IMG/VR virus record: IMGVR_UViG_3300046787_000408
Location: 186,001-250,000 of that record
DNA length: 64,000 bases
Reading direction: 5' to 3' (one strand)
Below the pieces are notes generated by a model. That model did not search any database. It saw only the letters and a list, made by a program, of their open reading frames with translations, and had not been told where the DNA came from. Shown piece by piece: positions 4,981 through 61,454 of the stretch (within the stretch, counting starts at the first letter, position 1; each line of letters begins with the position of its first letter). Position numbers and translations under genes: made by a program.

Positions 4981-4995
4981 TGAAAGGAGAAAAAT

Positions 4996-5544
4996 ATGGA
5001 ACGAGTTATCAAACTCACTTTGAGTATAGTAGGACTTCTGGTACTGATTACTTTGGTACAAGCAGTTACACAATACAAATTTCTAAAACTCACGGACTTT
5101 GTAAGTAATCGTCCCACAGTTACAGCCGCAGAGCGCCAGCGACAACTGGATTGCTTGGCTATCAACATTTACCGCGAAGCCGGGCATGAACCGTTTGAAG
5201 GCAAGGTAGGAGTAGCACAGGTCACGTTAAATCGTTCTGAGCACCCGGACTTTCCCAAAGACATTTGTGCTGTGGTGTACCAAAAGAACAAGATCATGGA
5301 ACGAGTAGTATGCCAGTTCTCATGGTACTGTGATTCAGCACACCGTGCTAGAGCCATCAATAAACCAGCTTACGATGAAAGTATGGAAGTGGCCAAAAAG
5401 GTCCTGCTTGAAGGATTTAGACTTCCTAGTCTAGAACCAGCCCTGTATTACCATGCTGATTATGTAAACCCACAGTGGCGCCTGGATCGCATTACCAAGA
5501 TTGGTGCCCATATCTTTTATAAACCACGTGAACGGAACATCTAA
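4996..5544 (+). CDS. SleB/Hydrolase_2 cell-wall hydrolase
   Basis: N-terminal TM; CLAINIYREA.GEPFEGKVGVAQVTLNR, CQFSWYC, ALYYHADYVNPQW, IGAHIFY. Confidence 0.9.
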   Translation: MERVIKLTLSIVGLLVLITLVQAVTQYKFLKLTDFVSNRPTVTAAERQRQLDCLAINIYREAGHEPFEGKVGVAQVTLNRSEHPDFPKDICAVVYQKNKIMERVVCQFSWYCDSAHRARAINKPAYDESMEVAKKVLLEGFRLPSLEPALYYHADYVNPQWRLDRITKIGAHIFYKPRERNI

Positions 5545-25492: not shown

Positions 25493-25656
25493 AGTGTGTA
25501 CTCCTAGTTGTGTCCTTGCTTGGACCTAGATATTTACGGTCACAAAAAAATCAAGATATGTGGACACATTTCTCCTGTTTGTTCGACTAAGTATTAGGCT
25601 GTCCACAGTCAAATATCAAATTCTACCACTGTAGCCATTTGACTAAATATACGACC

Positions 25657-26256
25657 ATGGACAAAGAACTTTTTAAGAACAATGAAGATTATTGGCAGGT
25701 CGCCGACAACATCCGCGACATCTACATGTCAGAAGGAACTATTACCACACTACTTGACTTTGAGCGAGTGCTTGATGAAGTAGATGTGTATGCGTTCAAG
25801 AACTGGGAAATTGGTGAACTAGTTGCTGGTCCTGAAATCTCAAAGTACAGAGTGGCTTGCACCTTTATGTGGCCTGAAAAACTCATGCCTGATCCACGTG
25901 GCGGCCGTAGACTGTTACCGTTTGATTGTGAAGTCAGTTATCGCAAGGTAGAAATGAAAATACCAATCAAGATTGAGGACCCGTCAGACTACCGCGAAGG
26001 CACCAAAAAAGCTCGCATTATTGAAAAGCCTGTGTGGCTGGTAGAAATAGTCATGCCCAAGAGTCTCATGAGTGATATTCGTACTGGTAGTATTGAAATG
26101 GAAGACCAAGACATTGATCTTGAAGAATTGGATCAAGCCTATGAGCAGGATCTTGACAAGGAAGAGTCACAAAGCGATGAGCAAGCACAAGATGCACAAG
26201 CAGACTTGACAGCTCAACCAGGACAAGCCCCACAACCCGCAGCAGGAGCAATTTGA
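25657..26256 (+). CDS. hypothetical protein (acidic tail)
   Basis: TAAATA at 25644; start MDKELF. Confidence 0.75.
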   Translation: MDKELFKNNEDYWQVADNIRDIYMSEGTITTLLDFERVLDEVDVYAFKNWEIGELVAGPEISKYRVACTFMWPEKLMPDPRGGRRLLPFDCEVSYRKVEMKIPIKIEDPSDYREGTKKARIIEKPVWLVEIVMPKSLMSDIRTGSIEMEDQDIDLEELDQAYEQDLDKEESQSDEQAQDAQADLTAQPGQAPQPAAGAI

Positions 26257-26795
26257 TGTTTGAACATTTATTAGAAGGTCTGCAATACAAAGACCTAGAC
26301 GGCATGATGAAGAGCACCGTTCACATTGATGAATTTGCCAGCAAAATGGGCGATGATGATGACATCATTGTACTGAGCTTTTTTGTACGTGATCTACAAG
26401 CAGCCAAGGATCTTGTAAACTGGTTTGAAAAGGGCTATGACTTTGTGTTGGACGCTGATCGCTCACCAGGTGAAATCAAACCCAGTCGCTACTTGGTGTA
26501 TGTAGAGATTCGTCGTCGCTCAAGTGCGCCCGGAGCTGTACAAACATTGTTGGACGATCTTGGCACCTTGACAGAATTTGAACCCGGTGACTGGCAGATG
26601 CGTTACCAAGGTCGCACACAGCCCTGGAGCGAAGAAGCATTTGCCAAAGCAGTGCCCTTGACTCCCAATGCATACAGACAAGCCAATCAAGGCGAACTAA
26701 ACGAAATGCGAGCAGCAGCAGGCTTGGCACATCGTCCAGTACATGTACCTTCAGCAGAAGTACGTTCACTACAAAGTATGGCAGGCATCCGATGA
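26256..26795 (+). CDS. hypothetical protein
   Basis: 179 aa, tight coupling. Confidence 0.75.
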   Translation: MFEHLLEGLQYKDLDGMMKSTVHIDEFASKMGDDDDIIVLSFFVRDLQAAKDLVNWFEKGYDFVLDADRSPGEIKPSRYLVYVEIRRRSSAPGAVQTLLDDLGTLTEFEPGDWQMRYQGRTQPWSEEAFAKAVPLTPNAYRQANQGELNEMRAAAGLAHRPVHVPSAEVRSLQSMAGIR

Positions 26796-27928
26796 GAGCA
26801 AACCAATTTATATCCAATGATAGTGACGCAATGCGCAAACCAACTTCAGAGTCTGTGGCAGGACCTGAAAAGTGCTGGCCCGGATACCGCAAGGTAGGAA
26901 CACAACCTGGCACAGGTAAGAACGCTGGCAAGCGTGTGAACGACTGCGAAAAGATCAAAGAAGATGACGTGGCTGAAGGCATTCTTAATAAAATTGCCAA
27001 CAAAGTAATGGGTGCTGCTCCGGAACAACCAAAGTACAAAGTTGGCCAACGAGTCAAGTACGAAACAAGTCCGCAGCAACCTGATTGGGAAGATGGCGGC
27101 AGTGGCGTCGGCGTAATAACTTCTTACAAGAATGGTCACTATATGATTAACGGTAATCCAGTTAATCACTTTGAGATTAAAGGTGTGGTAGAGCAAGGCG
27201 TGGCGGAAGGCTGGGTTGATACTATCAAAAATATATTCAAGCGTAAACCAAAGGACAATCGAACCGTGTTTGACAGAGATCCAGAAGCAATGCGTGAATT
27301 TGAACGATCAGGTGGATACGAAGCCGGCTTAGATATCATGGGTTGGCAAATAGGTTGGTTTGCTGCCGAACACGCCCAAGGTGATACGATGCAACAAGCG
27401 TTTTCAAAGTTATATTACGGCGGCGGTAGCCCAATGCCGTTTGATAATCGTTCATTCAAGCTAGCATGGGTAGCATACAACAAACACCACGGTCCTCAAA
27501 TAGCAGAGCAAGGTGTGGCGGAAGGCAACTATGACAGAGATGACTACTACAATGCACGTCAAGGTAGAGAATACGGCAAAGACCTAACTGCCACAGGCTA
27601 TGGCGGTGATGGATCAAAAACTCGTCGAGATGACATCTTCAAAGGACAAAGCAAACGCTTGCCCGCAGATCCTTTTGCTCGTACCAGTGGTGCTGTGCCA
27701 AAAAGTGGTACAGGACGAATTCACAGCAATGCACTACCTGGCGAAATGGATGAAGCCAACGATCAAAAGATTGGTGGACGTTATGATGCTGACGACTTTG
27801 ATGACATGGTGTCAAGACTGAAAAAATTAGCGGGCGCAGGTCCCATGAAAACAGTATACGATCCTAACCGTCGCGTGTACCGCAACATGCCCACAGCACA
27901 ACAACCTGCACAACAGCCCAAAAAATGA
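26792..27928 (+). CDS. modular protein, putative capsid internal polyprotein
   Basis: MRANQFI start; three (Q/D)GVAEG-type junctions separating unrelated modules. Confidence 0.75.
   Translation: MRANQFISNDSDAMRKPTSESVAGPEKCWPGYRKVGTQPGTGKNAGKRVNDCEKIKEDDVAEGILNKIANKVMGAAPEQPKYKVGQRVKYETSPQQPDWEDGGSGVGVITSYKNGHYMINGNPVNHFEIKGVVEQGVAEGWVDTIKNIFKRKPKDNRTVFDRDPEAMREFERSGGYEAGLDIMGWQIGWFAAEHAQGDTMQQAFSKLYYGGGSPMPFDNRSFKLAWVAYNKHHGPQIAEQGVAEGNYDRDDYYNARQGREYGKDLTATGYGGDGSKTRRDDIFKGQSKRLPADPFARTSGAVPKSGTGRIHSNALPGEMDEANDQKIGGRYDADDFDDMVSRLKKLAGAGPMKTVYDPNRRVYRNMPTAQQPAQQPKK
27190..27211 (+). repeat. QGVAEG DNA repeat copy
   Basis: AGAGCAAGGCGTGGCGGAAGGC. Confidence 0.9.
27505..27526 (+). repeat. 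QGVAEG DNA repeat copy
   Basis: AGAGCAAGGTGTGGCGGAAGGC. Confidence 0.9.
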
Positions 27929-28212
27929 GAGCTAACGAATTCATTTCAGAAAAATGGAGCAAAAAGTACAAACGCTCCATTGACTGTTCACGACCACAAG
28001 GATTTAGCCAACGTGCGCATTGCCAGGGTCGTGCAAAAAATGAAGATGAACAACTGGATGAGTTGCAATTTCTAGGTTCTGAATGCACCAAGGACTGTTC
28101 AGGACACCGTGCAGGCTACGACTGGTCAGCACGTAAAGGCAACATTCAAGGCAACAGTCCTTATAGCCCAAGTTTCAATAAAGGCGCTAATCTCCGCGCT
28201 GCTGGGAAGTAA
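27925..28212 (+). CDS. small two-module basic/Cys protein, putative internal protein
   Basis: MRANEFISE start; modules separated by QLDEL. Confidence 0.75.
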   Translation: MRANEFISEKWSKKYKRSIDCSRPQGFSQRAHCQGRAKNEDEQLDELQFLGSECTKDCSGHRAGYDWSARKGNIQGNSPYSPSFNKGANLRAAGK

Positions 28213-28947
28213 TCACCGTTTGGTATACACAAAATACAACCTACCTAGTTCGGTAGGTTCTTTTTTGAATGTGTCTAAAGTTAGGTCGTAGCGTTCAGCA
28301 AACTGATTCACAATTTCAAATGTCCAAGGAAAGATATCCACATACGGACCTGTCTTGTGTGGAATACCTGGGTTGGCTCGCAAAAAGAACTTGCCTCCGG
28401 GACGTAACAGATTTACACAATGCGCAAATCGTGCTTCAATTTCGTCTTGTGAATTAAAGTTAATGCTGCCCAAGGCAATGATCACATCATGTGATTCAGG
28501 CTTGACTTTGTAGTCCAAGATATCTACTTCGTAATCTGCTGCATCATTGTAAGGATCAATGCCAATAATGTTGTTGATGCGTCCCTTGAATGGATGGTAT
28601 CCGCAGCCCACATCCAGTACCTTTTCAGGGTTGAGTTTGTTTACTTCTTCTACCAGAGCCCAACCTGAGTGATCGTACTCGCCTGTTCTAGGACGCCAGA
28701 TTTCACTAAAGAAACGATGTGTGTAACGTTCACTTAGATCCGCAACAATATCTTGTAGTGTACCGCGATACTCGCAAGGTAAAGCAAGCTCTGCTTCTAC
28801 TGCATCCTTGAACTTTGAGTATCGTGCTGGGGTCCATGGTAGCAAATTAACCACAGTGTCTGACGTGATAGAAATATCTGCATACTTGGGCAAATTAAAT
28901 GCTTCTTGCAAATTTTTTGTAATTAGGTTAAAAATTTTGGTATTCAT
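28213..28947 (-). CDS. class I SAM-dependent methyltransferase with extra N-terminal helical domain
   Basis: VLDVGCG, IGIDP, DVIIALGSI, LLRPGG. Confidence 0.85.
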   Translation of the reverse strand: MNTKIFNLITKNLQEAFNLPKYADISITSDTVVNLLPWTPARYSKFKDAVEAELALPCEYRGTLQDIVADLSERYTHRFFSEIWRPRTGEYDHSGWALVEEVNKLNPEKVLDVGCGYHPFKGRINNIIGIDPYNDAADYEVDILDYKVKPESHDVIIALGSINFNSQDEIEARFAHCVNLLRPGGKFFLRANPGIPHKTGPYVDIFPWTFEIVNQFAERYDLTLDTFKKEPTELGRLYFVYTKR

Positions 28948-28997
28948 AGGAAATTTTGATATATAAGTTAGATTTCAGTACTATTTAAGGAGTTTGC

Positions 28998-29960
28998 ATG
29001 AACATCAAAAAAATTATAGCCATACTAGCACTTGTACCAGGACTGTCACTAGCCTGGCAACCTACAAAACCTGTTACAGTGGTATTCCCCAACGGACCGG
29101 GTGCTGGCAACGAAATCTCATTCCGCATTGCAGCTGATATTGTAGAAAAGTCCACTGGTGTAGTGTTCAAGCCCGAGTATCGTCCAGGTGCTGATGGCAA
29201 CATTGCTATGAATCACTTTGTAACAGTACCGCGTGACGGGCATACCATTAGTGTACCTGCTTGCCAATCAAATTGGGTAACTCCTGAAATCTGGTATCCC
29301 AACATGATCAAGTACAGCCCTATGGATCTAGAACCTGTTGCTAACATTGCTCGTAGTCCTCTAGCGTTCTGGGCACACCCTAGCAGCCGGATCAATACGC
29401 CAGAAGAATTTGTGGCTGCTATTCGTAATCGGCAACGAATGACCGTGGCCATTGGCGGTGGCGGGCACAAACTGGCTGTAGAATATCTTGTGGATAAAGT
29501 AAGTGTAGCAGGCAGTGATAATCTGCAAACTGTTTCTTACAAAGGTCCTGCACAGGCTCTATTAGATGTCATGGGCGGACATGTAGAATTTGGGGTAACA
29601 CCTGTAGCAGTGGGCTATCCGCATGTGCAAACTGGCAAGCTCAAATTCATTGGTATAGCTGATACCCGCACTTTGCCCGGGCTTGAACACATTCCTTTGA
29701 TGAGCAAGGCTGCTCCAGGACTCAGCATACATGGCTGCTGGAACTTGGCCTTGCCGCCAGGCACCCCACAAGAGATTCAAACTTGGTATCGTGATCAGTT
29801 TGTACCAGCAATTCGTTCAGCTGAAGCTGCTGCCAAGTTCAAAGAAAACATGATGTATACTACTCCTGCTGAGCACAGTGCTGCAGGTGTTAGAGCCAGC
29901 ATGGCACGCCTGCAACAGACATGGCAACCAATTGCTCGCAGAATTGATCCTAACAAATGA
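28998..29960 (+). CDS. Bug/TctC-family periplasmic solute-binding protein
   Basis: WQPTKPVTVVFP..PG, RPGADGNIA, PRDGHTI, YKG.AQALLDVMGGHV. Confidence 0.9.
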   Translation: MNIKKIIAILALVPGLSLAWQPTKPVTVVFPNGPGAGNEISFRIAADIVEKSTGVVFKPEYRPGADGNIAMNHFVTVPRDGHTISVPACQSNWVTPEIWYPNMIKYSPMDLEPVANIARSPLAFWAHPSSRINTPEEFVAAIRNRQRMTVAIGGGGHKLAVEYLVDKVSVAGSDNLQTVSYKGPAQALLDVMGGHVEFGVTPVAVGYPHVQTGKLKFIGIADTRTLPGLEHIPLMSKAAPGLSIHGCWNLALPPGTPQEIQTWYRDQFVPAIRSAEAAAKFKENMMYTTPAEHSAAGVRASMARLQQTWQPIARRIDPNK

Positions 29961-38031: not shown

Positions 38032-38794
38032 TCACTACGCTACCTTGGGCGTGAGCCGAACTGCTTCCGCGGATGAAATCAAACGAGCATTTAGAAAGCT
38101 GGCTAGCCAACACCATCCAGACAAGGGTGGGGACACTGCCAAGTTTCAACAGATACAAGCTGCCTACGACACACTTGGTGATGCCAACAAACGTGCTGCT
38201 TACGACAATCCTGCTCCGCAATTTTCAGGATTTGGCGGCAGCACACAGTTCAACAACATACATGACATATTCAACATGTTTGGGCAAGGCTTTCCAGGCC
38301 AACAGCGCCGTAATCATGTTCGCATGAGCTTGTGGATCACGTTGCGTGATGTAGCAACAGGTGGCCGGCGTCCTGTGAGTTTGAGCACTGGGCAAGGTCA
38401 AAACACTGTGGAAATTGAGATTCCGTTAGGTCTCAATGACAATGACTCTATTCAGTATTCTGGCTTGGCACCAGGTGGACAAGATCTAGTGGTCACTTTT
38501 AGAATACAACCAGATGCAAATTGGTCTAGATCTGCCCTAAATCTTGCTACTGAACAAACTGTTAGTATTTGGGATTTGATACTAGGCGGAGACCTAGTGG
38601 TCAAAAGTATAACTGGGGAGAGTTTGACTGTGACTATCCCTGTAAATACTCAACCTGGCACAGTATTACGGCTACGAACACAAGGGTTAAGAGATCAACA
38701 AGGACGGCAAGGCGATTTGCATGTGAAACTGGCAGCTCGAATTCCACAACCTATACCACCCGAACTAGCCGCAGCAATACAACAGTACCGATAA
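38024..38794 (+). CDS. DnaJ/CbpA-type co-chaperone (no zinc finger)
   Basis: J-domain HHPDKGG; C-terminal DnaJ substrate-binding domains. Confidence 0.92.
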   Translation: MLDHYATLGVSRTASADEIKRAFRKLASQHHPDKGGDTAKFQQIQAAYDTLGDANKRAAYDNPAPQFSGFGGSTQFNNIHDIFNMFGQGFPGQQRRNHVRMSLWITLRDVATGGRRPVSLSTGQGQNTVEIEIPLGLNDNDSIQYSGLAPGGQDLVVTFRIQPDANWSRSALNLATEQTVSIWDLILGGDLVVKSITGESLTVTIPVNTQPGTVLRLRTQGLRDQQGRQGDLHVKLAARIPQPIPPELAAAIQQYR

Positions 38795-38803
38795 CCAAAA
38801 TAC

Positions 38804-38832
38804 TTGCGTTTATTGGGCAGATATCTTATAAT
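38804..38832 (+). promoter_or_regulatory. sigma70-type promoter
   Basis: TTGCGT-17-TATAAT. Confidence 0.6.
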
Positions 38833-38859
38833 GTAACATACGCATCATTTAGGAACCAA

Positions 38860-41133
38860 ATGCAAAACAATCCCGAAATTGAACAACTGGTAGACCAAGC
38901 AGTAAAAATTGCTCGCACCAAACAGCACGAATATGTGCTGACTGAACATCTTTTGCTGGCCATGATTCAACACGTGCCGTTTCGCAAAGTGGTGGAAAAA
39001 TACGGTGTAGAAGTAGAAATGATGGAAGCAGAACTGGATGCTTATCTTGACAGCCAGATGAATCTTGTACGGGATCGAGCAGATCTTCAGCCCAGAAAAA
39101 CACAAACACTGGAACGAATTTTTAACCGTGCCAATGTGCAGGCAATGTTTACTGGTCGCCGTAGTCTTAGTGTAATCGATCTTTATCTTTCAATCATGGC
39201 CGAAACCAACAGCCATGCACACTACTATTTGCTAAAGTACGGCATTCGCAAAAGTGAGTTTGTGGAGTTCTATCAAAAGACTTATTCTCAGTCCGACGTC
39301 AAGTTGAGTACACAACAAGCTGACGATATCCTAACTGAACATTGCACCAATATCACTGCACAAGCCGCTGCCAATCAGTTGGAGCCCATGATTGGTCGTG
39401 CCACTGAGTTGCAGGAAATGATCACAGTGATGGCACGACGATTCAAAGCCAACGTTCTCATGGTAGGCGACCCAGGTGTGGGCAAAACTGCTATCATTGA
39501 TGGCTTGGCCCAAGAGATTTTGGCTGGACGTGTTCCCGAGTTCTTGAAGGGTCATGAAGTATGGAGCCTAGAAGTTGGCTCCCTGCTGGCAGGAAGCAAG
39601 TATCGCGGTGAGTTTGAAGAAAAGTTCAAGCAAGTTATTGCTGCCTTGGAAGCCAAAAAGAACTGTATCTTGTTTGTTGACGAAGCACACACCATGAAAG
39701 GTGCAGGAGCCGGATCACAAAGCAGCTTGGACTTTGCCAACATGCTGAAACCAGCTATTACCAAAGGTCATTTGAAAGTTGTTGCAAGTACTACCTGGGA
39801 AGAGTTCTACGAAAGCTTTGAAAAGGATCGTGCGCTAATGCGTCGATTCCATCGCTTGAGTATTGATGAGCCAAATGCCAGCACTACTGAGCAAATCTTG
39901 ATTGGCTTGAGTCCTAGGCTGGAACAGTTTCACAATGTGTTAATTGATACAGAAGCCATGACAGCCGCAGTTGAACTGAGTGGACGTTACATTCATGATC
40001 GCAAGAACCCTGACAAATCAATTGACTTGTTGGACGGTGCTTGTGCTAGAGAACGTGTGAAAGATGCAGGTACTGTTACAATCACACGAGACATGATCAT
40101 GGCGCAAGTTAGTAAAATAGCCAATGTGCCCATGGATCGACTGCAAAACGAACGCAGTACCAAGATTCTTGAACTGGAAAACAACATCAAGCAAAAGCTG
40201 TATGGACAGGATGCTGCTGTGGATGCTGTGCTGGAACGAGTGTACATCAACTTTTCAGGCATTGGTAACGAGACTCGCCCCATGGCCAGCTTCTTGTTCC
40301 TGGGCCCAACTGGTACTGGTAAAACAGAACTGGCCAAACTGTTGAGCGATAACTTGGACATGAAACTACTCAAGTACGACATGAGTGAGTATCAAGAAAA
40401 GCACACAGTATCTAGCTTGATTGGCGCACCTCCGGGCTATGTGGGCTTTGAAGATGGCAACGTGGGCGGCGGCAAACTGATCAGTGACATTACTAAAAAT
40501 CCATTCAGTATCATCTTGTTTGACGAGATTGAAAAAGCACACCCAGATGTATCAAACATCTTGTTGCAGATGCTGGACGAAGGTCATATCACAAGCTCTG
40601 CAGGCAAACGAGTAGATGTCAAAAACACCATTATTATCCTGACTTCAAACTTGGGTGCCCGAGACAACGAAGGCAATGCTATTGGCTTTGGATCACAAGA
40701 AAAAACCGGCAACGAAGACAAAGCCATGAAAGAGTTCTTCAAGCCTGAACTGCGAAATCGTATTGATCAGATCTGCAGATTCAACAAGCTGGACCAGTTG
40801 GCTATCAAGAAGATCGTGGTCAAGTTTGTGGATCAACTCAAAGCAAGTTTGTCCAACAAAAACATTCGACTCAACATGAGCGAAGCAGTAATTGACTTGC
40901 TGGCCGAACAAGGCTATGATCCTAAAATGGGTGCTCGTCCCTTGAGTCGCAAAATTGATGAACTGATTCGTGTGCCACTTTCAAAGAAGATCCTGTTTGA
41001 TCGACTTAGCGATTGCACCGTGACTGCACACTTGGTTGACAAACAAGTAACATTTGAAGTAGATGCATTACCAGTTACTGGTGCGGACGCTGACGGATTT
41101 ATTCAGGTGGATCATGGTAACATCGGCATTTGA
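38860..41133 (+). CDS. clpA: ClpA-like AAA+ chaperone
   Basis: Two Walker A motifs (GDPGVGKT, GPTGTGKT), LIGAPPGYVG, DEIEKAHP, IGF ClpP-binding loop, no M-domain; start MQNNP after SD AGGA. Confidence 0.93.
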   Translation: MQNNPEIEQLVDQAVKIARTKQHEYVLTEHLLLAMIQHVPFRKVVEKYGVEVEMMEAELDAYLDSQMNLVRDRADLQPRKTQTLERIFNRANVQAMFTGRRSLSVIDLYLSIMAETNSHAHYYLLKYGIRKSEFVEFYQKTYSQSDVKLSTQQADDILTEHCTNITAQAAANQLEPMIGRATELQEMITVMARRFKANVLMVGDPGVGKTAIIDGLAQEILAGRVPEFLKGHEVWSLEVGSLLAGSKYRGEFEEKFKQVIAALEAKKNCILFVDEAHTMKGAGAGSQSSLDFANMLKPAITKGHLKVVASTTWEEFYESFEKDRALMRRFHRLSIDEPNASTTEQILIGLSPRLEQFHNVLIDTEAMTAAVELSGRYIHDRKNPDKSIDLLDGACARERVKDAGTVTITRDMIMAQVSKIANVPMDRLQNERSTKILELENNIKQKLYGQDAAVDAVLERVYINFSGIGNETRPMASFLFLGPTGTGKTELAKLLSDNLDMKLLKYDMSEYQEKHTVSSLIGAPPGYVGFEDGNVGGGKLISDITKNPFSIILFDEIEKAHPDVSNILLQMLDEGHITSSAGKRVDVKNTIIILTSNLGARDNEGNAIGFGSQEKTGNEDKAMKEFFKPELRNRIDQICRFNKLDQLAIKKIVVKFVDQLKASLSNKNIRLNMSEAVIDLLAEQGYDPKMGARPLSRKIDELIRVPLSKKILFDRLSDCTVTAHLVDKQVTFEVDALPVTGADADGFIQVDHGNIGI

Positions 41134-42764: not shown

Positions 42765-43562
42765 ATGACCACAATTGTAATCATGCCTGGCGGCTTCCAT
42801 CCCTATCACGCAGGGCATCACGCCCTTTATCAAAGTGCGCAACGCACATTTCCTGATGCCGAAGTGTATGTTGCTGCAACCAACGATACCAGTTCAAGAC
42901 CTTTTCCGTTTGCTGTAAAAGAAAAACTAGCCCGATTAGCCGGAGTTGAAACTGGGCACTTTGTACAAGTAAGTTCGCCATTTCGTGCGGCCGAAATAAC
43001 CAGCAAGTACAATCCTGAAAAAGACGTCTTGATCTTTGTGCGCAGTGAAAAAGACGCCAACTCGCAACCACAACCTGGCGGAGTCAAAAAAGACGGGTCA
43101 CCTAGTTACCTACAACCTTTGTTGGGTGCTCGAAAGCTAGAGCCATTTGCCAAGCATGCTTACATGGCCTACTTGCCCACAGTAGAGTTTGGTCCAGGTA
43201 TGACGTCGGCCACACAGATTCGTAGTGCTTGGCCCAGTTTAGACGAACGCCGCAAAACAGCTCTTGTGATGAGCCTGTACCCCAAGACGCAAAGCAACAC
43301 CAAGTTAGCTGCCACAGTGGTCAAACTGTTGGACACAGCCATTGGCAGTGAGCATGGTGTGGCGGAAGGTGCTCCGATTGTGGTAGCACAGGCTCCTATC
43401 GATATTCGCAATCCTAAAAAGGCTCCACAGCCATATAGAAATCAGGGCGACATTGTTCCGCCAACAACCCCGCCAAGCACTGAGAAGCGTGGCGTTAAAG
43501 GTCGTCCTGGTCAAAGACCTATGCCTCAACACAACGAAAACAACGATTACCTAGATGAATGA
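42765..43562 (+). CDS. HxGH cytidylyl/nucleotidyltransferase with appended C-terminal module
   Basis: IMPGGFHPYHAGH, PFPFAVK, SATQIR; EHGVAEG junction before tail. Confidence 0.8.
   Translation: MTTIVIMPGGFHPYHAGHHALYQSAQRTFPDAEVYVAATNDTSSRPFPFAVKEKLARLAGVETGHFVQVSSPFRAAEITSKYNPEKDVLIFVRSEKDANSQPQPGGVKKDGSPSYLQPLLGARKLEPFAKHAYMAYLPTVEFGPGMTSATQIRSAWPSLDERRKTALVMSLYPKTQSNTKLAATVVKLLDTAIGSEHGVAEGAPIVVAQAPIDIRNPKKAPQPYRNQGDIVPPTTPPSTEKRGVKGRPGQRPMPQHNENNDYLDE
43350..43369 (+). repeat. QGVAEG DNA repeat copy (HGVAEG variant)
   Basis: GAGCATGGTGTGGCGGAAGG. Confidence 0.85.
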
Positions 43563-44691
43563 CGTGTACTGCCCTTTGATATTCAAAGGTATGTATTTGG
43601 AACGGCACAGTGCTGATACCAGTTTAGTTGCACCTTGTTGCGCTGCAACTGGAGAATTGGTCAACAACTCTCAGGTTAATTTTAACACTAATCCTTTTTT
43701 GTCAAGGCTTCGTAAAGAAAACCAAGACGGCATTGCCAGCAAAGAATGCAATGTGTGTTGGGATCAAGAGAAATATACTGGCCGTAGCCTTAGAACCAGT
43801 TCAGTTGAGTACTATGCTAATTTCAAAGATAGTCCGTTACAAACAACAGAATTAAAAAATCTAGACTGGAACGTAGAACCAATATGCAACGCCAAATGCG
43901 TTATATGCAGTAGTTACCACAGTAGCGCTTGGGCCGCTGAAGATCAAAAATTTATACCCGGTGCTGCTTTGCCTATACGAACAGCCTCACTAGCAAAAAG
44001 CAACAGTATTATTGATGCTGTGGATTTTTCAACTGTAAAAAGAGTTTATTTCAACGGTGGGGAACCAGTACTAAGTCAGGACCCTGAATTTATTTTACAA
44101 AAATTAGCAGATTCTGGAAACCTTGAAAACACTCAAATAGCATTCAACATGAACGGCAGTCGTATGCCTTCAAAGAATCTAATTGATTTGCTCAAGAGAG
44201 CAGAACATGTTACTGTGTTTTTGAGTATTGACGGCACCGATCAACAATTTGAATACATACGGTATCCTCTGAACTGGATCCAGGTCATGTCCAATATTGA
44301 TCAAATAATGCAAATGGGATTCGACGAGGTCTGCATGACCACTGCACTGGGTATTCATAATATTCATATTGCCCAGAGCACCGAAGATTGGTGGAATGAT
44401 TATACAAAAAGTTATCGTGATCAAATTGGTATAAACAATACGTATCAACTTGTGGTTGGGTTGCTTGGTATCAACTCAGCTAGTAGCACTCTTAAAGATC
44501 AACTGTTGATAGATTTTCAGGGACAGCCTGGGAGGGTCGCTGAGCTAGTAATCAATTGTTTGGAATCATGCACAGGTAGCAACCAATGGATTGATTGGTT
44601 AGATACGTTGGATCGTCGGAGAGCTTTGAGTTGGCGTCAAACTTTTCCTGAGCTATATCTAGCTGTGCAGCGAGAAGGGGCTGCAAAATAA
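43555..44691 (+). CDS. radical SAM protein with N-terminal Cys cluster
   Basis: CNAKCVIC, FNGGEP, SIDG, YIRYP; N-terminal C..PCC..CxxC. Confidence 0.88.
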   Translation: MNDVYCPLIFKGMYLERHSADTSLVAPCCAATGELVNNSQVNFNTNPFLSRLRKENQDGIASKECNVCWDQEKYTGRSLRTSSVEYYANFKDSPLQTTELKNLDWNVEPICNAKCVICSSYHSSAWAAEDQKFIPGAALPIRTASLAKSNSIIDAVDFSTVKRVYFNGGEPVLSQDPEFILQKLADSGNLENTQIAFNMNGSRMPSKNLIDLLKRAEHVTVFLSIDGTDQQFEYIRYPLNWIQVMSNIDQIMQMGFDEVCMTTALGIHNIHIAQSTEDWWNDYTKSYRDQIGINNTYQLVVGLLGINSASSTLKDQLLIDFQGQPGRVAELVINCLESCTGSNQWIDWLDTLDRRRALSWRQTFPELYLAVQREGAAK

Positions 44692-45623: not shown

Positions 45624-48600
45624 ATGAATACCGCTGAGTTAGATTCCTATAGCCTTGACGATGCCGTCAAGTTCAACCAAGACTTGAACCCCCGCCTGTG
45701 GCACAAACAGCGCATGCGACCTGAGGTGCGTGAAAAGCTGTTGGAGATTGCAGCAGACTTCAAACAAAGCCTGGGACTGTCAGACCTTGAAGTCAAAGAC
45801 ATCACAGTATCAGGGTCCAACGCAGGTTTTACCTATACTCCACACTCAGACATTGATCTGCATCTTGTGGTAGACATTCCCCAAGCAGACACTAGCGATG
45901 TTTATCGTGAACTGTTTGACGCCAAGAAATACCAATACAACGCTGAACACAATATCACCATTGGTGGATATGATGTAGAGTTGTATGTGGAAAATGCCAA
46001 TCAACCACCAGTTAGTCAAGGTATGTACAGCCTTGTAAAAGATGACTGGATCAACATTCCCAAGCGTAGACGCAGCACTGTAAACGACGATGCTGTGCGC
46101 AGCAAGTATGGGGATCTCAAGCACAGAATACAAACTGCTGTAGACAGCAAAGATCACGAACAGATTTCTGCTATGGCAGCAAAGATCAAAAAAATGCGCC
46201 AAACTGGCCTGGCTCGCAGTGGTGAGATGGGTCCTGAGAATTTGGCTTACAAGATGCTCCGAGCACAAGGCTACATCAAGAAACTGTACGATGCTAGAAC
46301 TGCTGCTCGCGATCTTGAACTCAGTTTGACTGAGCGCAAGAAAAAGAAAAAGCGAGTTCGCTACGGTTTCTGGAGTCCAGGTTTTGCATTTGGAGACGGC
46401 GACAGCGGAGATGGCGGAGGCGGTGGTGAAAGTATTCAAGAAGTATCAGTTACCCCAGACGGTGTTAGTCCCAGTACCAAGATGTTTTTGGAACAAGATT
46501 CTGCCAAAGATGTTGATGTTCTAAAAAGTTTTGCACGTTACGTAAGCGGTGAGCTAGGCCTTGCTAAAATACCCAAGATTATTATCAAGCGCAAGCCTGA
46601 GTGGTCTGAACAAAATGGCAGCTTTGGACAGTATGTGCCTGAGCTCAATCAACTCACACTGAGTCTGCATGGTCGTCACATTGTGGATGTGTTGCGTACC
46701 TTGGCTCATGAGCTTACACATGCGCATCAACAACAGACCACAGGTATTCCTGACAACGGCGGCGATACCGGCAGTGAATTTGAAAACGAAGCCAATGCTC
46801 GTGCAGGCGAATTCATGCGTCATTTTGCTGATACCCACCCTGAATACTTTGATTCACGAACACTAGGCGAAAGCTCAGGCTACATTCCTACTGCTGCTGA
46901 AAAGAACGATCCACGTTTTGTAATGGCACTGAGTCCCGACGTTCAGCCAGGGGCAACTGGCAAGAATGCCAACCGCATGAGCTTGAAAACTGATGCACAG
47001 GGCCGTCCACAGCAGGCTCGTACAAACGGGCTAGTAGAATCCATGTCTCGAGAATTTGCCAAATTCCAATCAAAAGAAGAACCCTGGGACAGAGATAGCT
47101 ACGAGCCGCCAGGCCCAGAGTTTGAACCACAGATGCCAGCGGGCACAACTGAGATTGACGTAAAAGATCTTACAGACTGGTACAGACTTGGCATGGATAT
47201 CAGCGACATGGATGATGCCAAACCTGAAGATTACAATCAAGGTCCTCCAGATACTGTGGTAACATTTGCCAGCGACGAACTAGAACAGACCTATCTAAAA
47301 CAAATGAAGAGACTGGGGCTAAAGACAAAAGATCTAGATCCTGATGTCAAGGGTGGCGTGGACGTATCCGACCAGCATCAGCCCAAAGAAGACTTGTTGG
47401 AAATCAAAATGACCGGCAAAAACCTGCGAGCCGAAGCTGCCAAGACAGGCGCACAAGCTGGTATGGAATTTGAAATGATTGTGCCCAACACCGAAACCGA
47501 TGTTGAACCAGAATACGAACCTGACATGGATCAGGATCAACGTACTAGAAGTTTCAGTGACATTCGCGACTTCTTTCATGATGGTGACTACAATGGACGT
47601 AGACAAGTAGATAACCTGATGGATGAGTTAATTGGTGAGTACGAAGAATGGAAGCAGGAACAAACTGCTGAGCAATGGGATCGTGACGGTGTAGATTACA
47701 TGCGTGACTTTATTGAAGTCAATGAGTTGTTTGATCGCGACGAAGCCATGCTTCAAGCTAGAGCTGATGTTGTTGCAGCCAATCCTGACCTGCCGCCAGA
47801 GTCAGAAGACTTCACACAATTACTCACTGCCAGACTTGATGAACTACAAGAACAGTTTGTGCTAGAATCGTTTGAAGCTGGTGGCCGTATCTACAATGAC
47901 GCATTTGAAACATTTGCAGAAGAACAAAACGAAGAATACGACGAACGCAGTTTCTTGGATGACCGATATACCTACATGAGTGACATTCAAAGCAACTTTG
48001 ATATCAGCTGGCCCTATTACATTGACATCAACGATGGCCAAGGTGGAGATATGGACATTGATCAAGTGGCAGATGAGTTCAGTTCTTACATGGGCAAGCC
48101 TGTTAATGCCAGTCGCCAGTATCATGGTGGTCGTCGTGAAGCAGGAACTTATGTTGTGGAACCTGATGGTAGTCTAGAAGGCGACAATCCTGGCGATGGT
48201 GGCTTGGAATTTGTTAGCCCGCCCATGCCTATAGATGAAATGATTTCAGACTTGAACAAGGTCAAGTCCTGGGCAGACAAGACTGGTTGCTACACCAACG
48301 ACTCAACTGGCTTGCATATCAACATTTCGGTGCCCGACTATTCAATTGACAAGCTGGACTATGTTAAACTGGCCATACTCATGGGCGACGAATACATTCT
48401 GGACTTGTTTGGCCGCTCGGGCAACACCTATGCTAAATCAGCCATGGGCAAGATCAAATCAGCGCTGAAGCAAAAGCCTGAAGCCGCTGCACAAATCATG
48501 GACTTGATGAAACAAGGTCTGGACGGTGCTGCAACCAAGGCCATACACACAGGTATCACAGACAAGTATACTTCAATCAACACCAAGACTGGCTACATTG

Positions 48601-58294: not shown

Positions 58295-58697
58295 GTACGC
58301 TTTTGTCACAAAAGCACAACAGTTCCACTGGAATGTGGAAGGACCAGACTTTGGCCAACTGCACAAGTTCTTTAACATGATCTACGATGATGTGTATGGT
58401 GCAATTGATCCCACAGCTGAATACATTCGTGCGCTGAACGAATATGCTCCTGGTAGTTTTGAGCGTTTTGCAGAGTTATCTCGTATTTCTGGACAAACAA
58501 AAATTCCACGTGCTCGACTCATGCTTGAAGAATTGCTGGCCAACAATGGTCAAATGATAGAACTATTAAATGAATGCTTTGGGGAAGCTGAACAAGAAAA
58601 CCAACAAGGCATCATGGACTTTTTGGCCTCGCGTATTGACGCTCATCAAAAGCATGGCTGGATGTTGAGAAGTTATTTGAAAGACCAACGAGCATGA
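58257..58697 (+). CDS. dps: Dps/ferritin-like DNA protection protein
   Basis: FHWNVEGPDFGQLHKFF, AEYIRAL, KHGWMLRS; SD GAGG. Confidence 0.92.
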   Translation: MLADALKTLLATEYAFVTKAQQFHWNVEGPDFGQLHKFFNMIYDDVYGAIDPTAEYIRALNEYAPGSFERFAELSRISGQTKIPRARLMLEELLANNGQMIELLNECFGEAEQENQQGIMDFLASRIDAHQKHGWMLRSYLKDQRA

Positions 58698-59425
58698 ATC
58701 ACGACATACGATCAATTCTAGATCGACTAGCCACAGTGGAGAGTCGTACTACTCCAGTTAATGTCAAGTCTGGGCTGAATGCACAACAAAAAAGTGTACC
58801 ACAATTACCAGCTTTGTTTCAGCCACGCAACATCAGCACAGTGCTCAAAAGTAAAAAAGACCCTGCTCATCCCATGAAGGGCGAATTTGTGGGAGACTCA
58901 GTTGAGCCACAAGCACCAAGTTTGGCAGAAACCATGCAGGCTGTGGAAGAAGACATGCTGGGCAAAGTCAAACGTGACTTTGTAGACTACCTAGAACGTC
59001 TAGAAGACAAAAACAAAATTGACAAGGCCTTGGTACACAAAGCCAAGCAAGAACTTGACATAGAAGATCCCATTGAAGAAGATCCCACACAAGCTGAACC
59101 AGCTGGCATAGCCCCACCTGCTCCAGCACAAGATCCTGTGTTGCCCGAAAGCGACTTTGAGGATTCAGAACTAGCACATGACATTGACCAAACTGCTGCA
59201 AGTCAAGCAGTAGCAGCGGAACAACCAGTCAAAACAGTGGCCATGGAAGATGGCGCTGTGTTAGAAATCTACGGCGACCAAGGTCGCGGGTTTGAAGTAC
59301 GACACGGTGGCCGTAGTTTGCCCACACGCTTTCCCAATATTGATCACGCTGACATGGCAGTGAAGATTTTCCAAAAACGCAGAAAAAACGCTGACTTGGA
59401 CCAAGATTACCTGGAAGAAAAATAA
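58694..59425 (+). CDS. hypothetical modular acidic protein
   Basis: 243 aa; ends DYLEEK like the DYLDE end of 42765. Confidence 0.75.
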   Translation: MNHDIRSILDRLATVESRTTPVNVKSGLNAQQKSVPQLPALFQPRNISTVLKSKKDPAHPMKGEFVGDSVEPQAPSLAETMQAVEEDMLGKVKRDFVDYLERLEDKNKIDKALVHKAKQELDIEDPIEEDPTQAEPAGIAPPAPAQDPVLPESDFEDSELAHDIDQTAASQAVAAEQPVKTVAMEDGAVLEIYGDQGRGFEVRHGGRSLPTRFPNIDHADMAVKIFQKRRKNADLDQDYLEEK

Positions 59426-59426
59426 A

Positions 59427-61454
59427 ATGTTTGTAGATGACCTCTTTGACCAAAAAACACTAACTGAAGCCCAAGGCGGCGGCAGTCCTTGGCACTCAGA
59501 ACCTGAGCAACAGACCATTGACGCTACTCGTCAGGCACGGTTGAATCGCGAGCGTGAACCTGCTGGCAGTGATGCTATTGATGCTAGACTACGAGCACAA
59601 AATGATCAGTTGGCACAGTATGCACAAACAGGCAACTTTTGGATCAAGCGCAAAGACACACAAGAACACATTAGTGATGCCATGGTAGGCAAGGCTGCTG
59701 CTGTGGCTGCTGCACAGGACATGTTGAAACAACAACCTGACTTGCGTGGCAACATTGTGATCACAGCATATGGTCCGGGTGAAACTCAAGGTGTGGCGGA
59801 AGGCGCCGGGATACCAACCGATTGGATGGGAGTCCCTACTAGATTGTCCAAGAACGACAAGAAGCCAATCAAGAGACCATCCGGGTATGATGAATATATC
59901 AAGCGCGGCGCCAAACAAGGATTCCAAGATGATCCTACTAATCCTTTGCGTAAAAAAGTCAAAGAGCAAGGTGTGGCGGAAGGCATGATGGATAATCCTG
60001 GTGAACAAGACTCGCCAGTAGCACAAGCTATCATTCGCAGAATTCTAATGCAGCGTACAGACCTGTTGGCCAAACACGGCCCAGAAAAAGTTGGACAGGC
60101 AGTAGACGAAGTTGCTGACTTTGTGGGCGATGTAGATGAAATTGGATCTAGCGATGTGTCAGGTTGGGTTCGTCATGTTGAGCAAATGCTGGGCAACATG
60201 GGCGAAGGTCTAGCAGAAGGCCAATTAGACGAACTTAGTTTCAAAGACATTCAAAAAAGCGCCAATAAGTTTGCCAAGGGCGCAAACAAGTTTACAAAAA
60301 ACGTAGCAGACACCGGTGCTGCCGTAGGCAATGCAGCTGGAGCATTAGGTGGTGCAATCAAACAAGTAGGCAAAACAGCTATTGCTGATCCAGTAGCTGC
60401 AACATACAATGCTACCAAGTCAGGCCTAGGTAAAGCATCCAATGTTGCTGCCAACACATACGGTGACCTAAAAAAAGGTGTACAAGCTGTTGGCAAAGCT
60501 GGGCAAACCGTTGGCACAGATATTGGAGCAGCAGGCACAGCCGTTGGTAAAGGCATACAAAGTGTAGGTCGTGGAGTTGCCAATGTTGCAGGCGGTACTG
60601 CTGGAGCATTAGGATCAGTTGCTGGTGGTGCTACTACTGGACTTGGTCGTGCAGCAGCTCGCGGATTCAATACCGGAGTACAAAATGTAGGCGGCGATGC
60701 CATTGACAAAATGCAAACCAACATAATGACTCCCAAAGCTGCTGACATACAGAAACAAATTGCTACCAAGCAAGATGAAATCAAAGCTTTGCAAGCAACA
60801 CTGGCTGGTGAACAATCTGCTGCTGCAACGGAACCCAAAGCTGGTATACAAACTGGTGCCACTGCATTAATTGATCCTGACACTAAGCGGCCTTACGAAA
60901 AAGACAAGCTGGCATCCATGTACGGATACAAAGAACCTGAAGCAGCCGATGCTGATAAAACTCCAGCAGCACCTGCTGCTCAGCCGCAAGGATTTAGTGC
61001 AGCCAATGTGATGAATTTGCCAGGCATGGCAAAGACTGCTGCTAAACCAGCAGCGCCTGCTAAAACAGCCAACTTTGCTGGCCCTGGCGGATACGGAGCA
61101 ACTACAACTGGCATCAAGGCTCCGGCTGCACCTAGCTCACCAGCGCTGGCAGCTCCTAAACTACCTGGTGCGCCTCGAGTTACTGCTGGTGGACCAACGC
61201 CAGCTGAAAAAGCCAATCTTGACAAGCGTATAGCAGCGGCAGCTCCGGCTGTGGCTGAAGCTTTGGCACAAGTTGAACGCATGTTGGAAAGTGTCAACAG
61301 CAAGAAAAGTGCGGAAATGGTCAAGGCTTATGTGGATCAGAGGTTTACAGAACTAGGCCTACGCAACACTACTGAATGCCGTAGCATCATGGCACGTGTG
61401 GTACAAGAATCAGCTATTCGTCGCAGACAATATGCGAAGAGTCTAGCAAAATAA
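59427..61454 (+). CDS. modular protein, putative capsid internal polyprotein
   Basis: Two QGVAEG and one GLAEG junction; Gly/Ala amphipathic repeat region. Confidence 0.8.
   Translation: MFVDDLFDQKTLTEAQGGGSPWHSEPEQQTIDATRQARLNREREPAGSDAIDARLRAQNDQLAQYAQTGNFWIKRKDTQEHISDAMVGKAAAVAAAQDMLKQQPDLRGNIVITAYGPGETQGVAEGAGIPTDWMGVPTRLSKNDKKPIKRPSGYDEYIKRGAKQGFQDDPTNPLRKKVKEQGVAEGMMDNPGEQDSPVAQAIIRRILMQRTDLLAKHGPEKVGQAVDEVADFVGDVDEIGSSDVSGWVRHVEQMLGNMGEGLAEGQLDELSFKDIQKSANKFAKGANKFTKNVADTGAAVGNAAGALGGAIKQVGKTAIADPVAATYNATKSGLGKASNVAANTYGDLKKGVQAVGKAGQTVGTDIGAAGTAVGKGIQSVGRGVANVAGGTAGALGSVAGGATTGLGRAAARGFNTGVQNVGGDAIDKMQTNIMTPKAADIQKQIATKQDEIKALQATLAGEQSAAATEPKAGIQTGATALIDPDTKRPYEKDKLASMYGYKEPEAADADKTPAAPAAQPQGFSAANVMNLPGMAKTAAKPAAPAKTANFAGPGGYGATTTGIKAPAAPSSPALAAPKLPGAPRVTAGGPTPAEKANLDKRIAAAAPAVAEALAQVERMLESVNSKKSAEMVKAYVDQRFTELGLRNTTECRSIMARVVQESAIRRRQYAKSLAK
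59787..59804 (+). repeat. QGVAEG DNA repeat copy
   Basis: CAAGGTGTGGCGGAAGGC. Confidence 0.9.
59963..59984 (+). repeat. QGVAEG DNA repeat copy
   Basis: AGAGCAAGGTGTGGCGGAAGGC, identical to 27505 copy. Confidence 0.9.

Follow-up and report, generated by a model that had tools for sequence, protein, structure and literature searches.

A nucleotide-conserved linker joins shuffled protein cassettes in an uncultured T4-related phage and its relatives

Introduction

The internal head proteins of phage T4 (IPI, IPII, IPIII and Alt) are each encoded by a separate gene and carry a single N-terminal capsid-targeting leader, a propeptide of about 10 residues with conserved targeting positions ending in L/I-x-Glu. 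Diverse and fast-evolving cargo sits behind this conserved leader (PMC3012670, PMC9026906). The leader is processed by the prohead protease gp21 (family S77), which cuts after L/I-X-E, and its relatives in giant phages also cut after Glu (PMC9026906, PMC5694885). Modular shuffling at short conserved motifs has been described within the T4 superfamily, in tail-fibre genes 37/38 and in mobile promoter-stem-loop cassettes, where exchanges occur within or next to motifs flanking hyperplastic segments and no dedicated recombinase is involved (PMC3157838 and the work it cites). Integron gene cassettes, in contrast, depend on an adjacent tyrosine recombinase (IntI) and an attC-type imperfect palindromic site at each cassette end. 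Polyvalent proteins of phages and conjugative elements combine two to fifteen conflict-related domains in one polypeptide and are proposed to enter the host together with the DNA (PMC5512222). Finally, polyproteins of RNA viruses and cyanobactin-type RiPP precursors are cut at repeated recognition sites, which in the RiPP precursors flank hypervariable cores.

Here, we analysed a stretch of 64,000 nt (the window; positions 186,001 to 250,000 of IMG/VR record IMGVR_UViG_3300046787_000408) from an uncultured 300-kb T4-related phage. An initial annotation, made from the sequence alone, had noticed a DNA repeat encoding QGVAE|G that bounds in-frame modules, and had proposed that it is both a recombination site for cassettes and a maturation site freeing each module in the capsid, resulting in an integron-like library of virion-delivered effectors.

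Results

An 18-nt element occurs in frame in three unrelated genes

To determine whether the repeat is real, we searched the window for the 18-nt element CAAGGTGTGGCGGAAGGC, which encodes QGVAEG. Five strict and two decayed copies were found in three genes (Table 1), and the observation made in the initial annotation is thus confirmed. All five strict copies carry GTGGCGGAAGG and read (E/T)(Q/H)GVAEG in frame on the + strand, while none of 100 shuffles gave any match. As noted before, the spacings in gene 1 are 231 and 315 nt, and the two modules between copies are unrelated (BLASTP E = 10). The three genes are also unrelated to one another.

Table 1. Positions of the element and of associated features in the window. 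L followed by a number denotes a locus or contig of a relative.
Coordinates	Strand	Feature	Observations
25639..26795	+	Two overlapping genes homologous to PA5oct virion proteins gp189 and gp188	The slot just downstream is hypervariable among relatives
26792..27928	+	Gene 1, 378-aa putative polyprotein of unknown function with degenerate targeting leader (MRANQFIS...) and modules A, B, C and D separated by three motif copies	Start overlaps the stop of the upstream virion-protein homologue; module A always N-terminal and last ~58 aa always C-terminal in more than 100 mosaic homologues; homology to the orthologous locus L219 resumes exactly at 27512
26963..26980	+	Decayed motif copy (DDVAEG; GTG GCT GAA GGC), also located as 26969-26980	BLASTP segment ends of homologues cluster at residues 57-64
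27190..27211	+	Motif copy (EQGVAEG)	
27505..27526	+	Motif copy (EQGVAEG)	Exact match to the 22-mer of the initial annotation; breakpoint against L219
27925..28212	+	95-aa ORF with leader MRANEFISE	Stand-alone module of the same system
42765..43562	+	Gene 2, cytidylyltransferase-like enzyme, then a motif copy, then a 64-aa tail ending in DYLDE	Same tail cassette (APIVVAQAPI...) inside a 1055-aa putative polyprotein in L316; relatives have the enzyme alone
43349..43370	+	Motif copy (EHGVAEG)	
49814..50623	+	ORF with leader MRAQEFVTE	
51293..51499	+	68-aa ORF with leader MRASEFVTE	
51504..51704	+	66-aa ORF with leader MRAQEFIAE	Six consecutive residues identical to the N-terminal propeptide of T4 IPII and IPIII
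58694..59425	+	Conserved 243-aa protein ending in DYLEEK, directly upstream of gene 3	Relatives keep the synteny: Dps-like gene, this gene, polyprotein, radical SAM gene
59427..61454	+	Gene 3, 675-aa low-complexity putative polyprotein with two strict motif copies and one decayed copy	Breakpoints against L219, L220, L029 and L011 at 59783-59802, 59965 and 60205-60221
59783..59804	+	Motif copy (TQGVAEG)	
59963..59984	+	Motif copy (EQGVAEG)	Exact match to the 22-mer of the initial annotation
60204..60221	+	Decayed motif copy (EGLAEG), also located as 60207-60221 (GLAEG)	L011 carries an extra cassette at this point

To determine how widely the element occurs, we searched related uncultured viral contigs and found hundreds of copies between unrelated modules of 50-80 aa. 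Of 371 copies, 369 lie in long ORFs, all in one frame, although all six frames of the motif are free of stop codons. The two copies in short ORFs are two-mismatch chance matches. No cultured phage resembles the locus, as megablast of 25600-29000 and tblastn of gene 1 against 50,697 phage records found nothing. A search for the 18-mer in 596 Gb of cellular genomes yielded 97 mostly single hits, concentrated in GC-rich actinomycetes. This is chance level apart from a few MAG contigs that are probably viral, indicating that the element is not a host sequence. Only one paper in the literature searched contains the string QGVAEG, and it is unrelated. Further literature searches returned precedents, but no description of this system.

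Synonymous sites of the element are conserved

To determine whether conservation exceeds the requirements of the peptide, as claimed in the initial annotation, we compared codon usage in the motif to that of 41 window genes. In these genes, GCG accounts for 7.4% of Ala codons, GTG for 32% of Val codons and GAG for 19% of Glu codons. The use of GTG-GCG-GAA in five of five copies has a probability of about 1e-7 given the first copy, and the claim therefore holds. A first test of synonymous conservation was set aside as circular, because copies had been chosen by nucleotide similarity, and was replaced by two other samples. Among 195 copies defined by peptide, with one ascertaining copy removed per locus, 64% are exactly GGTGTGGCGGAA, and GCG is used in 82% against 12% background. 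Among 33 copies in 79 orthologous loci fetched through an unrelated protein, and thus collected without reference to the motif, 64% are exact and GCG is used in 88% against 9%, while the exact 12-mer is expected at 0.8%. The preference extends to the wobble base of the preceding codon, where AAG, GAG and CAG are favoured over AAA, GAA and CAA against the bias of the genome, and it ends sharply on both sides.

The nucleotide identity might merely reflect recent, rapid spread of cassettes that carry their linker with them, the motif being selected only as a cleavage or linker peptide. In line with this, many cassettes shared between contexts are 70-95% identical in protein, so that transfers are recent, and decayed copies still obey the peptide rule (see below). 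However, the motif stays about 95% identical across phages whose orthologous genes are only 67-78% identical, including the junction before a module that is itself only 67% identical. In addition, the constraint includes the wobble base of the neighbouring codon, and a leader peptide of the same genomes, MRAxEFIxE, is conserved as a peptide but shows ordinary synonymous variation, serving as an internal control. We therefore regard this explanation as unlikely, although sequence alone does not separate identity selected for recombination from identity as a by-product of spread.

A role of the sequence at the RNA or translation level, such as a binding site or a ribosome pause that helps each module fold, with shuffling being incidental, was also considered. 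The motif contains two purine-rich, Shine-Dalgarno-like stretches (AAGG and GGAAGG) and always lies between modules. However, no start codon follows at a fixed distance, by which internal translation starts after the motif were rejected, and no conserved flank or structure exists. A pause signal would not need 16-18 fixed bases and would not explain breakpoints inside the motif. Thus, this possibility appears very unlikely. T4-type late promoter words were not enriched in the window.

Modules are gained, lost and exchanged at the element

Constant module order among relatives and nucleotide identity matching codon bias had been named beforehand as findings that would contradict the proposal; neither was observed. 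Related upstream modules are joined to unrelated downstream modules, and the reverse. We found 1129 homologues of gene 1, and the 120 examined are all mosaic, with segment ends clustering at the motifs. The pair P0050 and P0051 is identical except for one 82-aa cassette, which at the DNA level is a clean 246-nt indel whose junction is a hybrid motif copy. Between the window and the orthologous locus L219, flanks are 70-78% identical and homology in gene 1 resumes within a motif copy. Similarly, breakpoints in gene 3 fall on its motif copies (Table 1). One putative polyprotein of a relative (L316) combines the N-terminal module of gene 3, the tail cassette of gene 2 and the C-terminal module of gene 1.

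All comparative evidence comes from metagenomic assemblies, and many copies lie near contig ends, as expected if the repeat breaks assemblies. However, assembly chimeras are a highly improbable cause of the mosaics, since the repeat is far shorter than a sequencing read or the final assembly k-mers, ORFs continue in frame across 369 of 371 copies, and the same architectures recur in independent samples and assemblers.

To determine whether a dedicated enzyme accompanies the element, we scanned window ORFs and 80 neighbouring genes of motif ORFs, with only about 10 kb around each copy being inspected. No integrase, invertase or recurrent nuclease was found, in agreement with the initial annotation, which had seen no dedicated recombinase in the window. 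The window holds a clamp loader, a polymerase fragment and PhoH. The conserved block of 18-20 nt is not palindromic and lacks conserved flanking arms. On the other hand, its information content is high across about 16-18 positions and falls to background at once, which looks more like a recognition site than like microhomology, and the junction of the clean indel lies inside it. A site for a sequence-specific recombinase, or for a nuclease coupled to repair, encoded elsewhere in the genome is therefore doubtful but not excluded. Such an undiscovered exchange machinery would be an in-frame analogue of integron cassettes or shufflons, working inside open reading frames and letting a community of jumbo phages trade modules in phase and so build combinatorial, self-dismantling polyproteins of capsid-delivered effectors.

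The element fits a prohead protease site and co-occurs with a T4-like leader

The motif is V-A-E followed by G, S or A, which at the sequence level fits the aliphatic-x-Glu rule of gp21. Decayed copies keep the T of GTG (a hydrophobic residue) and the GA of GAA (Glu) invariant, and thus retain [VILM]-x-E. Homologues of gp21 (37% identity, E = 1e-16) lie beside gp20-like and gp23-like genes on the motif-bearing contigs L014, L032 (at 4794-5420) and L052, and in more than 600 related contigs of up to 355 kb. No such gene could be linked to the window's own contig, the search of which was confined to the window. Group 2 jumbo phages are reported to use this protease (PMC7824862). However, head-module loci fetched through the gp21 homologue almost lack the motif, indicating that the element is not spread evenly through these genomes. 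Moreover, the closest cultured relative, PA5oct, annotates a ClpP-like protein as its head maturation protease, and homologues of it lie near motif genes in four loci.

The leader MRAxEF[IV]xE is present on four window ORFs (Table 1) and on 70 ORFs of related loci, but was not found in 73 kb of PA5oct or about 700 kb of cellular DNA. It precedes the same kinds of modules when these are separate genes. The residues that the leader of ORF 51504 shares with T4 IPII/IPIII are in register with the processing positions (PMC9026906). In contrast, the leader of gene 1 lacks the Glu, and gene 2 has no leader at all. Gene 1 is translationally coupled to homologues of proteins detected by mass spectrometry in PA5oct virions, which is the only hint of physical presence in the virion.

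Domains found in some motif ORFs comprise GNAT, ParB-like nuclease, Pol-beta nucleotidyltransferase, NT5C, SutA RNAP-binding, LysM and TonB_C, while most modules match no family and typical polyvalent anchor domains were not seen. This repertoire resembles that of polyvalent proteins, and QGVAEG might be a flexible structural linker in uncut multidomain proteins. However, TAT signal peptides begin 2-6 residues after the motif in five proteins, where they would not work unless freed, and in stand-alone genes they begin directly after the leader. The same modules occur as separate genes behind a cleavable-looking leader, and some motif copies sit 1-2 residues from a stop codon or just after a leader, where a linker has no role. 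Uncut proteins are therefore improbable. Structure prediction of gene 1 by AlphaFold gave a low-confidence model (mean pLDDT 58.9) for which Foldseek found no match, its only use being that low-confidence stretches coincide with the motif copies.

Discussion

Taken together, we consider it somewhat more likely than not that a subset of proteins of this T4-related jumbo phage and its freshwater relatives are polyproteins, strings of small, unrelated modules of about 50-130 aa joined by the linker (K/E/Q)-Q-G-V-A-E-G. In this view, a T4-type N-terminal targeting leader or a conserved terminal module would bring the whole string into the prohead core, and the gp21-family protease would cut after V-A-E at every linker. 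The freed modules, among them a GNAT acetyltransferase, a ParB-like nuclease, nucleotidyltransferases, an RNAP-binding domain, TonB/TolA-like domains with TAT export signals and many unknown folds, would travel in the head and enter the next host with the DNA. The 18-20 nt encoding the linker would act as a portable, phase-preserving recombination junction, where crossovers insert, delete or exchange whole modules between genes and between co-infecting phages without breaking the reading frame. Since each module would be released by cleavage, any order would work. Copies losing nucleotide identity would stop taking part in exchange and decay only as far as the protease rule allows, which would explain both the frozen synonymous sites of most copies and the [VILM]-x-E remnant in old ones.

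Of this model, the exchange of modules at the linker and the constraint on its nucleotides are demonstrated by comparative evidence, whereas targeting (from the similarity of the leader to the T4 capsid-targeting sequence), cleavage, packaging into virions, delivery into the host (by analogy with T4 internal proteins), the decay scheme and the mechanism of recombination are inferred. No cleavage, virion or injection data exist for any of these uncultured phages. No dedicated recombinase is needed if the general, promiscuous recombination of T4-type phages does the work, although 18 nt is short for homologous recombination. The interpretation given in the initial annotation is thus supported in part: each element of it that could be examined held, and the idea of a T4 gp21-type protease gained independent support, while cleavage, virion delivery and excised circles remain inferences and integrons serve only as an analogy.

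If this reading is right, the element shows how large phages diversify the set of proteins they carry into a host. One targeting signal and one protease rule would make any module a valid passenger, and a nucleotide-frozen junction would let modules be exchanged across genes and phages without frame errors. This would extend the T4 internal-protein paradigm from a few single genes to a community-wide cassette pool, and it marks out hundreds of small uncharacterised modules as candidate host-takeover or anti-defence proteins. For engineering phage-delivered proteins in laboratory systems, it offers a natural design of leader, cleavable linker and cargo. It is also an unusually clean case of synonymous sites in a coding sequence being held fixed for a reason other than the protein.

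Compared to the T4 internal proteins, with which the system shares a leader ending in aliphatic-x-Glu, diverse and fast-evolving cargo and a gp21 homologue on motif-bearing contigs, many cargos are fused here in one ORF and separated by an internal repeat of the putative cut site, and that repeat is frozen at the nucleotide level whereas the leader is not. As in motif-mediated shuffling of the T4 superfamily, breakpoints lie within or beside a short conserved motif. However, those motifs are structural parts of one protein or intergenic regulatory elements, while here one 18-nt junction is shared by unrelated genes across the genome and across phages and separates putatively independent proteins. 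With integrons the system has in common arrays of interchangeable units bounded by a repeated site, presence/absence polymorphism of single units and a pool shared across genomes, but no integrase, attC-like palindromic site or promoterless ORFs were found, and the units are in-frame protein modules within one ORF. Polyvalent proteins are likewise multi-module, with conflict-type domains of the kind that here occur in some motif ORFs, but are large, stable domain fusions without a universal nucleotide-conserved linker, whereas the modules here are small, mostly unknown and probably released one by one. RNA virus polyproteins and RiPP precursors, in which one translation product is cut at repeated sites, occur in different kingdoms and use different enzymes, and neither is known to use the cut site as a genome-wide recombination junction.

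Occurrence of the repeat in three window genes

To determine if the repeat described in the initial annotation is present as stated, we searched the window with the 22-mer and compared the result with shuffled sequences. Five copies or near copies were found, whereas none of 100 shuffles yielded a match. The observation was thus confirmed. All five copies contain GTGGCGGAAGG and read (E/T)(Q/H)GVAEG in frame within three ORFs, and two decayed copies were identified in addition. The spacings within gene 1 are 231 and 315 nt, and the two enclosed modules are unrelated, both as stated in the initial annotation. To determine whether the conservation exceeds what is required by the peptide, codon usage was calculated from 41 window genes. 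GCG accounts for 7.4% of the Ala codons, GTG for 32% of the Val codons, and GAG for 19% of the Glu codons. The shared codons are therefore far from what the peptide alone would give (probability of about 1e-7).

The window (at roughly 186-250 kb of the 299,983-bp IMG/VR contig IMGVR_UViG_3300046787_000408) had no nucleotide match to cultured phages in a search with positions 25600-29000. The encoded proteins include tail-fibre and baseplate-like proteins, a clamp loader, PhoH, a ClpA/B-like ATPase, an endolysin, a Dps-like protein, and radical SAM enzymes. The two genes upstream of gene 1 are homologues of those encoding the PA5oct virion proteins gp189 and gp188, and the synteny is the same as in PA5oct, with PhoH on the opposite strand followed by gp189 and gp188. 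The window belongs to an uncultured T4-related jumbo myovirus. The ClpA/B-like ATPase and a large protein with an amidoligase-like region were not linked to the repeat.

Features of the window and of related loci
Position	Strand	Feature	Remarks
26792-27928	+	Gene 1	Degenerate leader at 26792
26795		Slot after the gp188-like gene	Corresponds to the slot in related loci L303-L382
26849-26962		Module A of gene 1	Short Cys-containing motif (with 27958-28020: CWPGY...NDC and WSKKYKRSIDC...FSQRAHC)
26963-26980		Decayed motif copy	DDVAEG
27190	+	Motif copy	In gene 1
27505	+	Motif copy	In gene 1
27752-27760		Mosaic breakpoint inside module D	Gene 1 residues ~318-322, E-M-D-E|A
27925-28212		ORF with leader	MRAxEF[IV]xE
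27958-28020		Short Cys-containing motif	See 26849-26962
38569-41133		ClpA/B-like ATPase	phrog_4871, E = 6e-235
42765-43562	+	Gene 2	C-terminal tag DY[LIM][DE]E plus 0-3 residues
43349	+	Motif copy	In gene 2
43555-44691		Radical SAM gene, N-terminal twitch domain (NF033640)	Directly after gene 2; paralogue of 62431-63519
45624-49814		1396-aa protein	Amidoligase-like region
49814-50623		ORF with leader	MRAxEF[IV]xE
51293-51499		ORF with leader	MRAxEF[IV]xE
51504-51704		ORF with leader	MRAxEF[IV]xE
58694-59425		Conserved protein	C-terminal tag DY[LIM][DE]E plus 0-3 residues
59427-61454	+	Gene 3	
59783	+	Motif copy	In gene 3
59963	+	Motif copy	In gene 3
60204-60221		Decayed motif copy	EGLAEG
61568-62434		ORF	Between gene 3 and the radical SAM gene
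62431-63519		Radical SAM gene, N-terminal twitch domain (NF033640)	Follows gene 3 with one ORF between; paralogue of 43555-44691
L032 7870-8592		Homing-endonuclease-like gene (phrog_314)	Between the gp23-like capsid gene and a motif-bearing gene
L014 3241-3987		Homing-endonuclease-like gene (phrog_314)	Between the gp23-like capsid gene and a motif-bearing gene

The motif is a clade-wide viral element

To determine whether the motif occurs outside the window, viral contigs were scanned with the exact pattern, which identified at least 120 loci holding 160 copies. In every clear case, the pattern reads QGVAEG inside an ORF, and both flanks are unrelated from copy to copy. Allowing two mismatches to the 15-nt core, these loci plus the window hold 371 copies in 154 ORFs with a median stop-to-stop length of 484 aa. 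A single ORF holds up to nine copies, and the spacings peak at 50-80 aa. Only two copies fall outside long ORFs, and both are two-mismatch chance matches. All six reading frames of the motif are free of stop codons, yet only one frame is used. In contrast, a search of 596 Gb of cellular genomes with the 18-mer gave 97 mostly single hits in GC-rich actinomycetes, which is near chance, and multi-copy hits occurred only on a few short MAG contigs from lakes. The element therefore belongs to viruses.

The motif is constrained at the nucleotide level

Mismatches in near copies fall at the two edges of the element, while internal third-codon positions are as fixed as first and second positions. Information content is high from the A of CAA to the first G of the last Gly codon and drops to background at once on both sides. 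The exception is a preference for A-G just upstream, where AAG, GAG, and CAG outnumber AAA, GAA, and CAA by 169 to 62, against the bias of the genome. As a first divergence test was circular because copies had been selected by nucleotide similarity, copies were redefined by peptide. After removal of one ascertaining copy per locus, 125 of 195 xGVAEx copies are exactly GGTGTGGCGGAA, with GCG at 82% (background 12%), GTG at 81% (22%), and GGT at 94% (40%). To obtain a sample blind to the motif, we used 79 orthologous loci fetched through the gp189-like protein. Here, 21 of 33 copies are exact, compared to an expectation of about 0.8% for the exact 12-mer, and GCG is used in 88% against 9% background. 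The N-terminal leader MRAxEF[IV]xE (see below) served as an internal control: it is conserved as a peptide in the same genomes, but its synonymous sites vary normally. The nucleotide identity of the motif may be selected because it permits exchange, or it may merely reflect fast turnover.

Modules are gained, lost, and exchanged at the motif

Related upstream modules are joined to different downstream modules, and the reverse. Gene 1 has 1129 database homologues, and the 120 that were examined are all mosaics covering 10-40% of it, with segment ends clustering at residues 57-64, 135-147, and 237-244, which are the three motif copies. Module A is always N-terminal and the last ~58 residues are always C-terminal, with none to six cassettes between them. 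A further mosaic breakpoint was found inside module D at another hydrophobic-x-Glu site that is not a QGVAEG copy. Short Cys-containing motifs as in module A recur at the start of many modules in relatives and may represent small zinc-binding or disulfide-stabilised folds.

Two proteins, P0050 and P0051, are identical except for one 82-aa cassette. On their contigs this is a 246-nt indel, and the single copy in the shorter allele is a hybrid of the two flanking copies. The related locus L219 is orthologous to window 20-31 kb, with flanks that are 70-78% identical, and within gene 1 homology resumes exactly at 27512. Of two other related loci, L087 has no gene in this slot and L045 has a different motif gene. 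The homology of gene 3 to L219 and three further related loci (L220, L029, and L011) starts or stops at 59783-59802, 59965, and 60205-60221. Across 80 orthologous loci, the slot after gp188 is a hotspot that varies widely and holds polyproteins of 374-1055 aa with none to eight copies, small leader-bearing ORFs, an unrelated gene, or nothing. The unrelated gene, carried by many relatives, encodes about 220-240 aa beginning with MKLKSFGCSF and by eye resembles a GDSL-type hydrolase. One polyprotein, at the orthologous locus L316, joins the N-terminal module of gene 3, the tail cassette of gene 2, and the C-terminal module of gene 1. Thus, neither a constant module order without breakpoints at the repeat nor nucleotide identity as expected from codon bias, which had been set beforehand as grounds for rejection, was found.

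No recombinase or nuclease was found to recur next to the arrays. T4-type phages are known for promiscuous recombination at short conserved motifs (PMC3157838), which we take as the default. However, the sharp edges of the conserved block leave room for a dedicated enzyme.

Indications of a protease site and of capsid targeting

Decayed copies keep a hydrophobic residue three positions before an invariant Glu. T4 gp21 cuts after Glu in L/I-X-E, and its relatives in phiKZ and SPN3US also cut after Glu (PMC9026906, PMC5694885). Stand-alone small ORFs homologous to cassettes nearly all begin with the clade-specific leader MRAxEF[IV]xE, which resembles the T4 capsid-targeting sequence. It occurs on 74 ORFs in the related loci and the window, four of them in the window, and on none in 73 kb of PA5oct or in about 700 kb of cellular control DNA. 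According to the T4 record, the IPII and IPIII propeptides share six consecutive residues with the leader of window ORF 51504, and the hydrophobic residue and the Glu are in register with the positions that direct processing in T4 (PMC9026906). Homologues of T4 gp21 (E = 1e-16), gp23, and gp20 lie on three motif-bearing contigs, and this protease family is present in more than 600 related contigs of up to 355 kb. The gp21 homologue was not found on the window's own contig, of which only the window was read. In addition, the annotated head protease of PA5oct is ClpP-like, and homologues of it lie near motif genes in four loci.

TAT signal peptides begin 2-6 residues after the motif in five proteins and directly after the leader in stand-alone genes. 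A signal peptide buried inside a long protein makes sense only if it is freed. Some motif copies sit 1-2 residues before a stop codon or right after a leader, which fits leftover junctions better than structural linkers. The predicted structure of the gene 1 product is weak (mean pLDDT 58.9), but its low-confidence stretches coincide with the three copies.

A recurrent C-terminal tag was found on the two window ORFs listed in the table and on 15 further ORFs in related loci. It appears on a conserved protein upstream of polyproteins, on cytidylyltransferase-like enzymes, and on some polyproteins, and may be a docking peptide. It is absent from the control DNA apart from one copy on a MAG contig (L194) that carries the same protein family. 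In the related locus L093, the order Dps-like gene, DYLEE protein, polyprotein, radical SAM gene, and ClpP-like protease is conserved.

Predicted module functions and relation to known systems

Most modules match no known family. Those that do include GNAT acetyltransferases, ParB-like nucleases, Pol-beta-type nucleotidyltransferases, a 5'-nucleotidase, a SutA-type RNAP-binding domain, LysM, TonB/TolA C-terminal domains, DUF6321, and other DUFs. This repertoire overlaps that of the polyvalent proteins proposed to be injected with phage DNA (PMC5512222, PMC7824862).

The interpretation in the initial annotation, that the repeat is both a recombination site for cassettes and a maturation site that frees each module in the capsid, held wherever it could be tested and is in part supported. 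The constraint on the nucleotides and the shuffling of modules at the motif are established by sequence comparison, whereas cleavage, packaging, injection, and the mechanism of exchange are inferred. No description of this system was found in the literature searched. Taken together, we concluded that it is best described as a polyprotein extension of the T4 capsid-targeting and internal-protein scheme, with a nucleotide-frozen linker, inferred to be a cut site, that doubles as an in-frame recombination junction.
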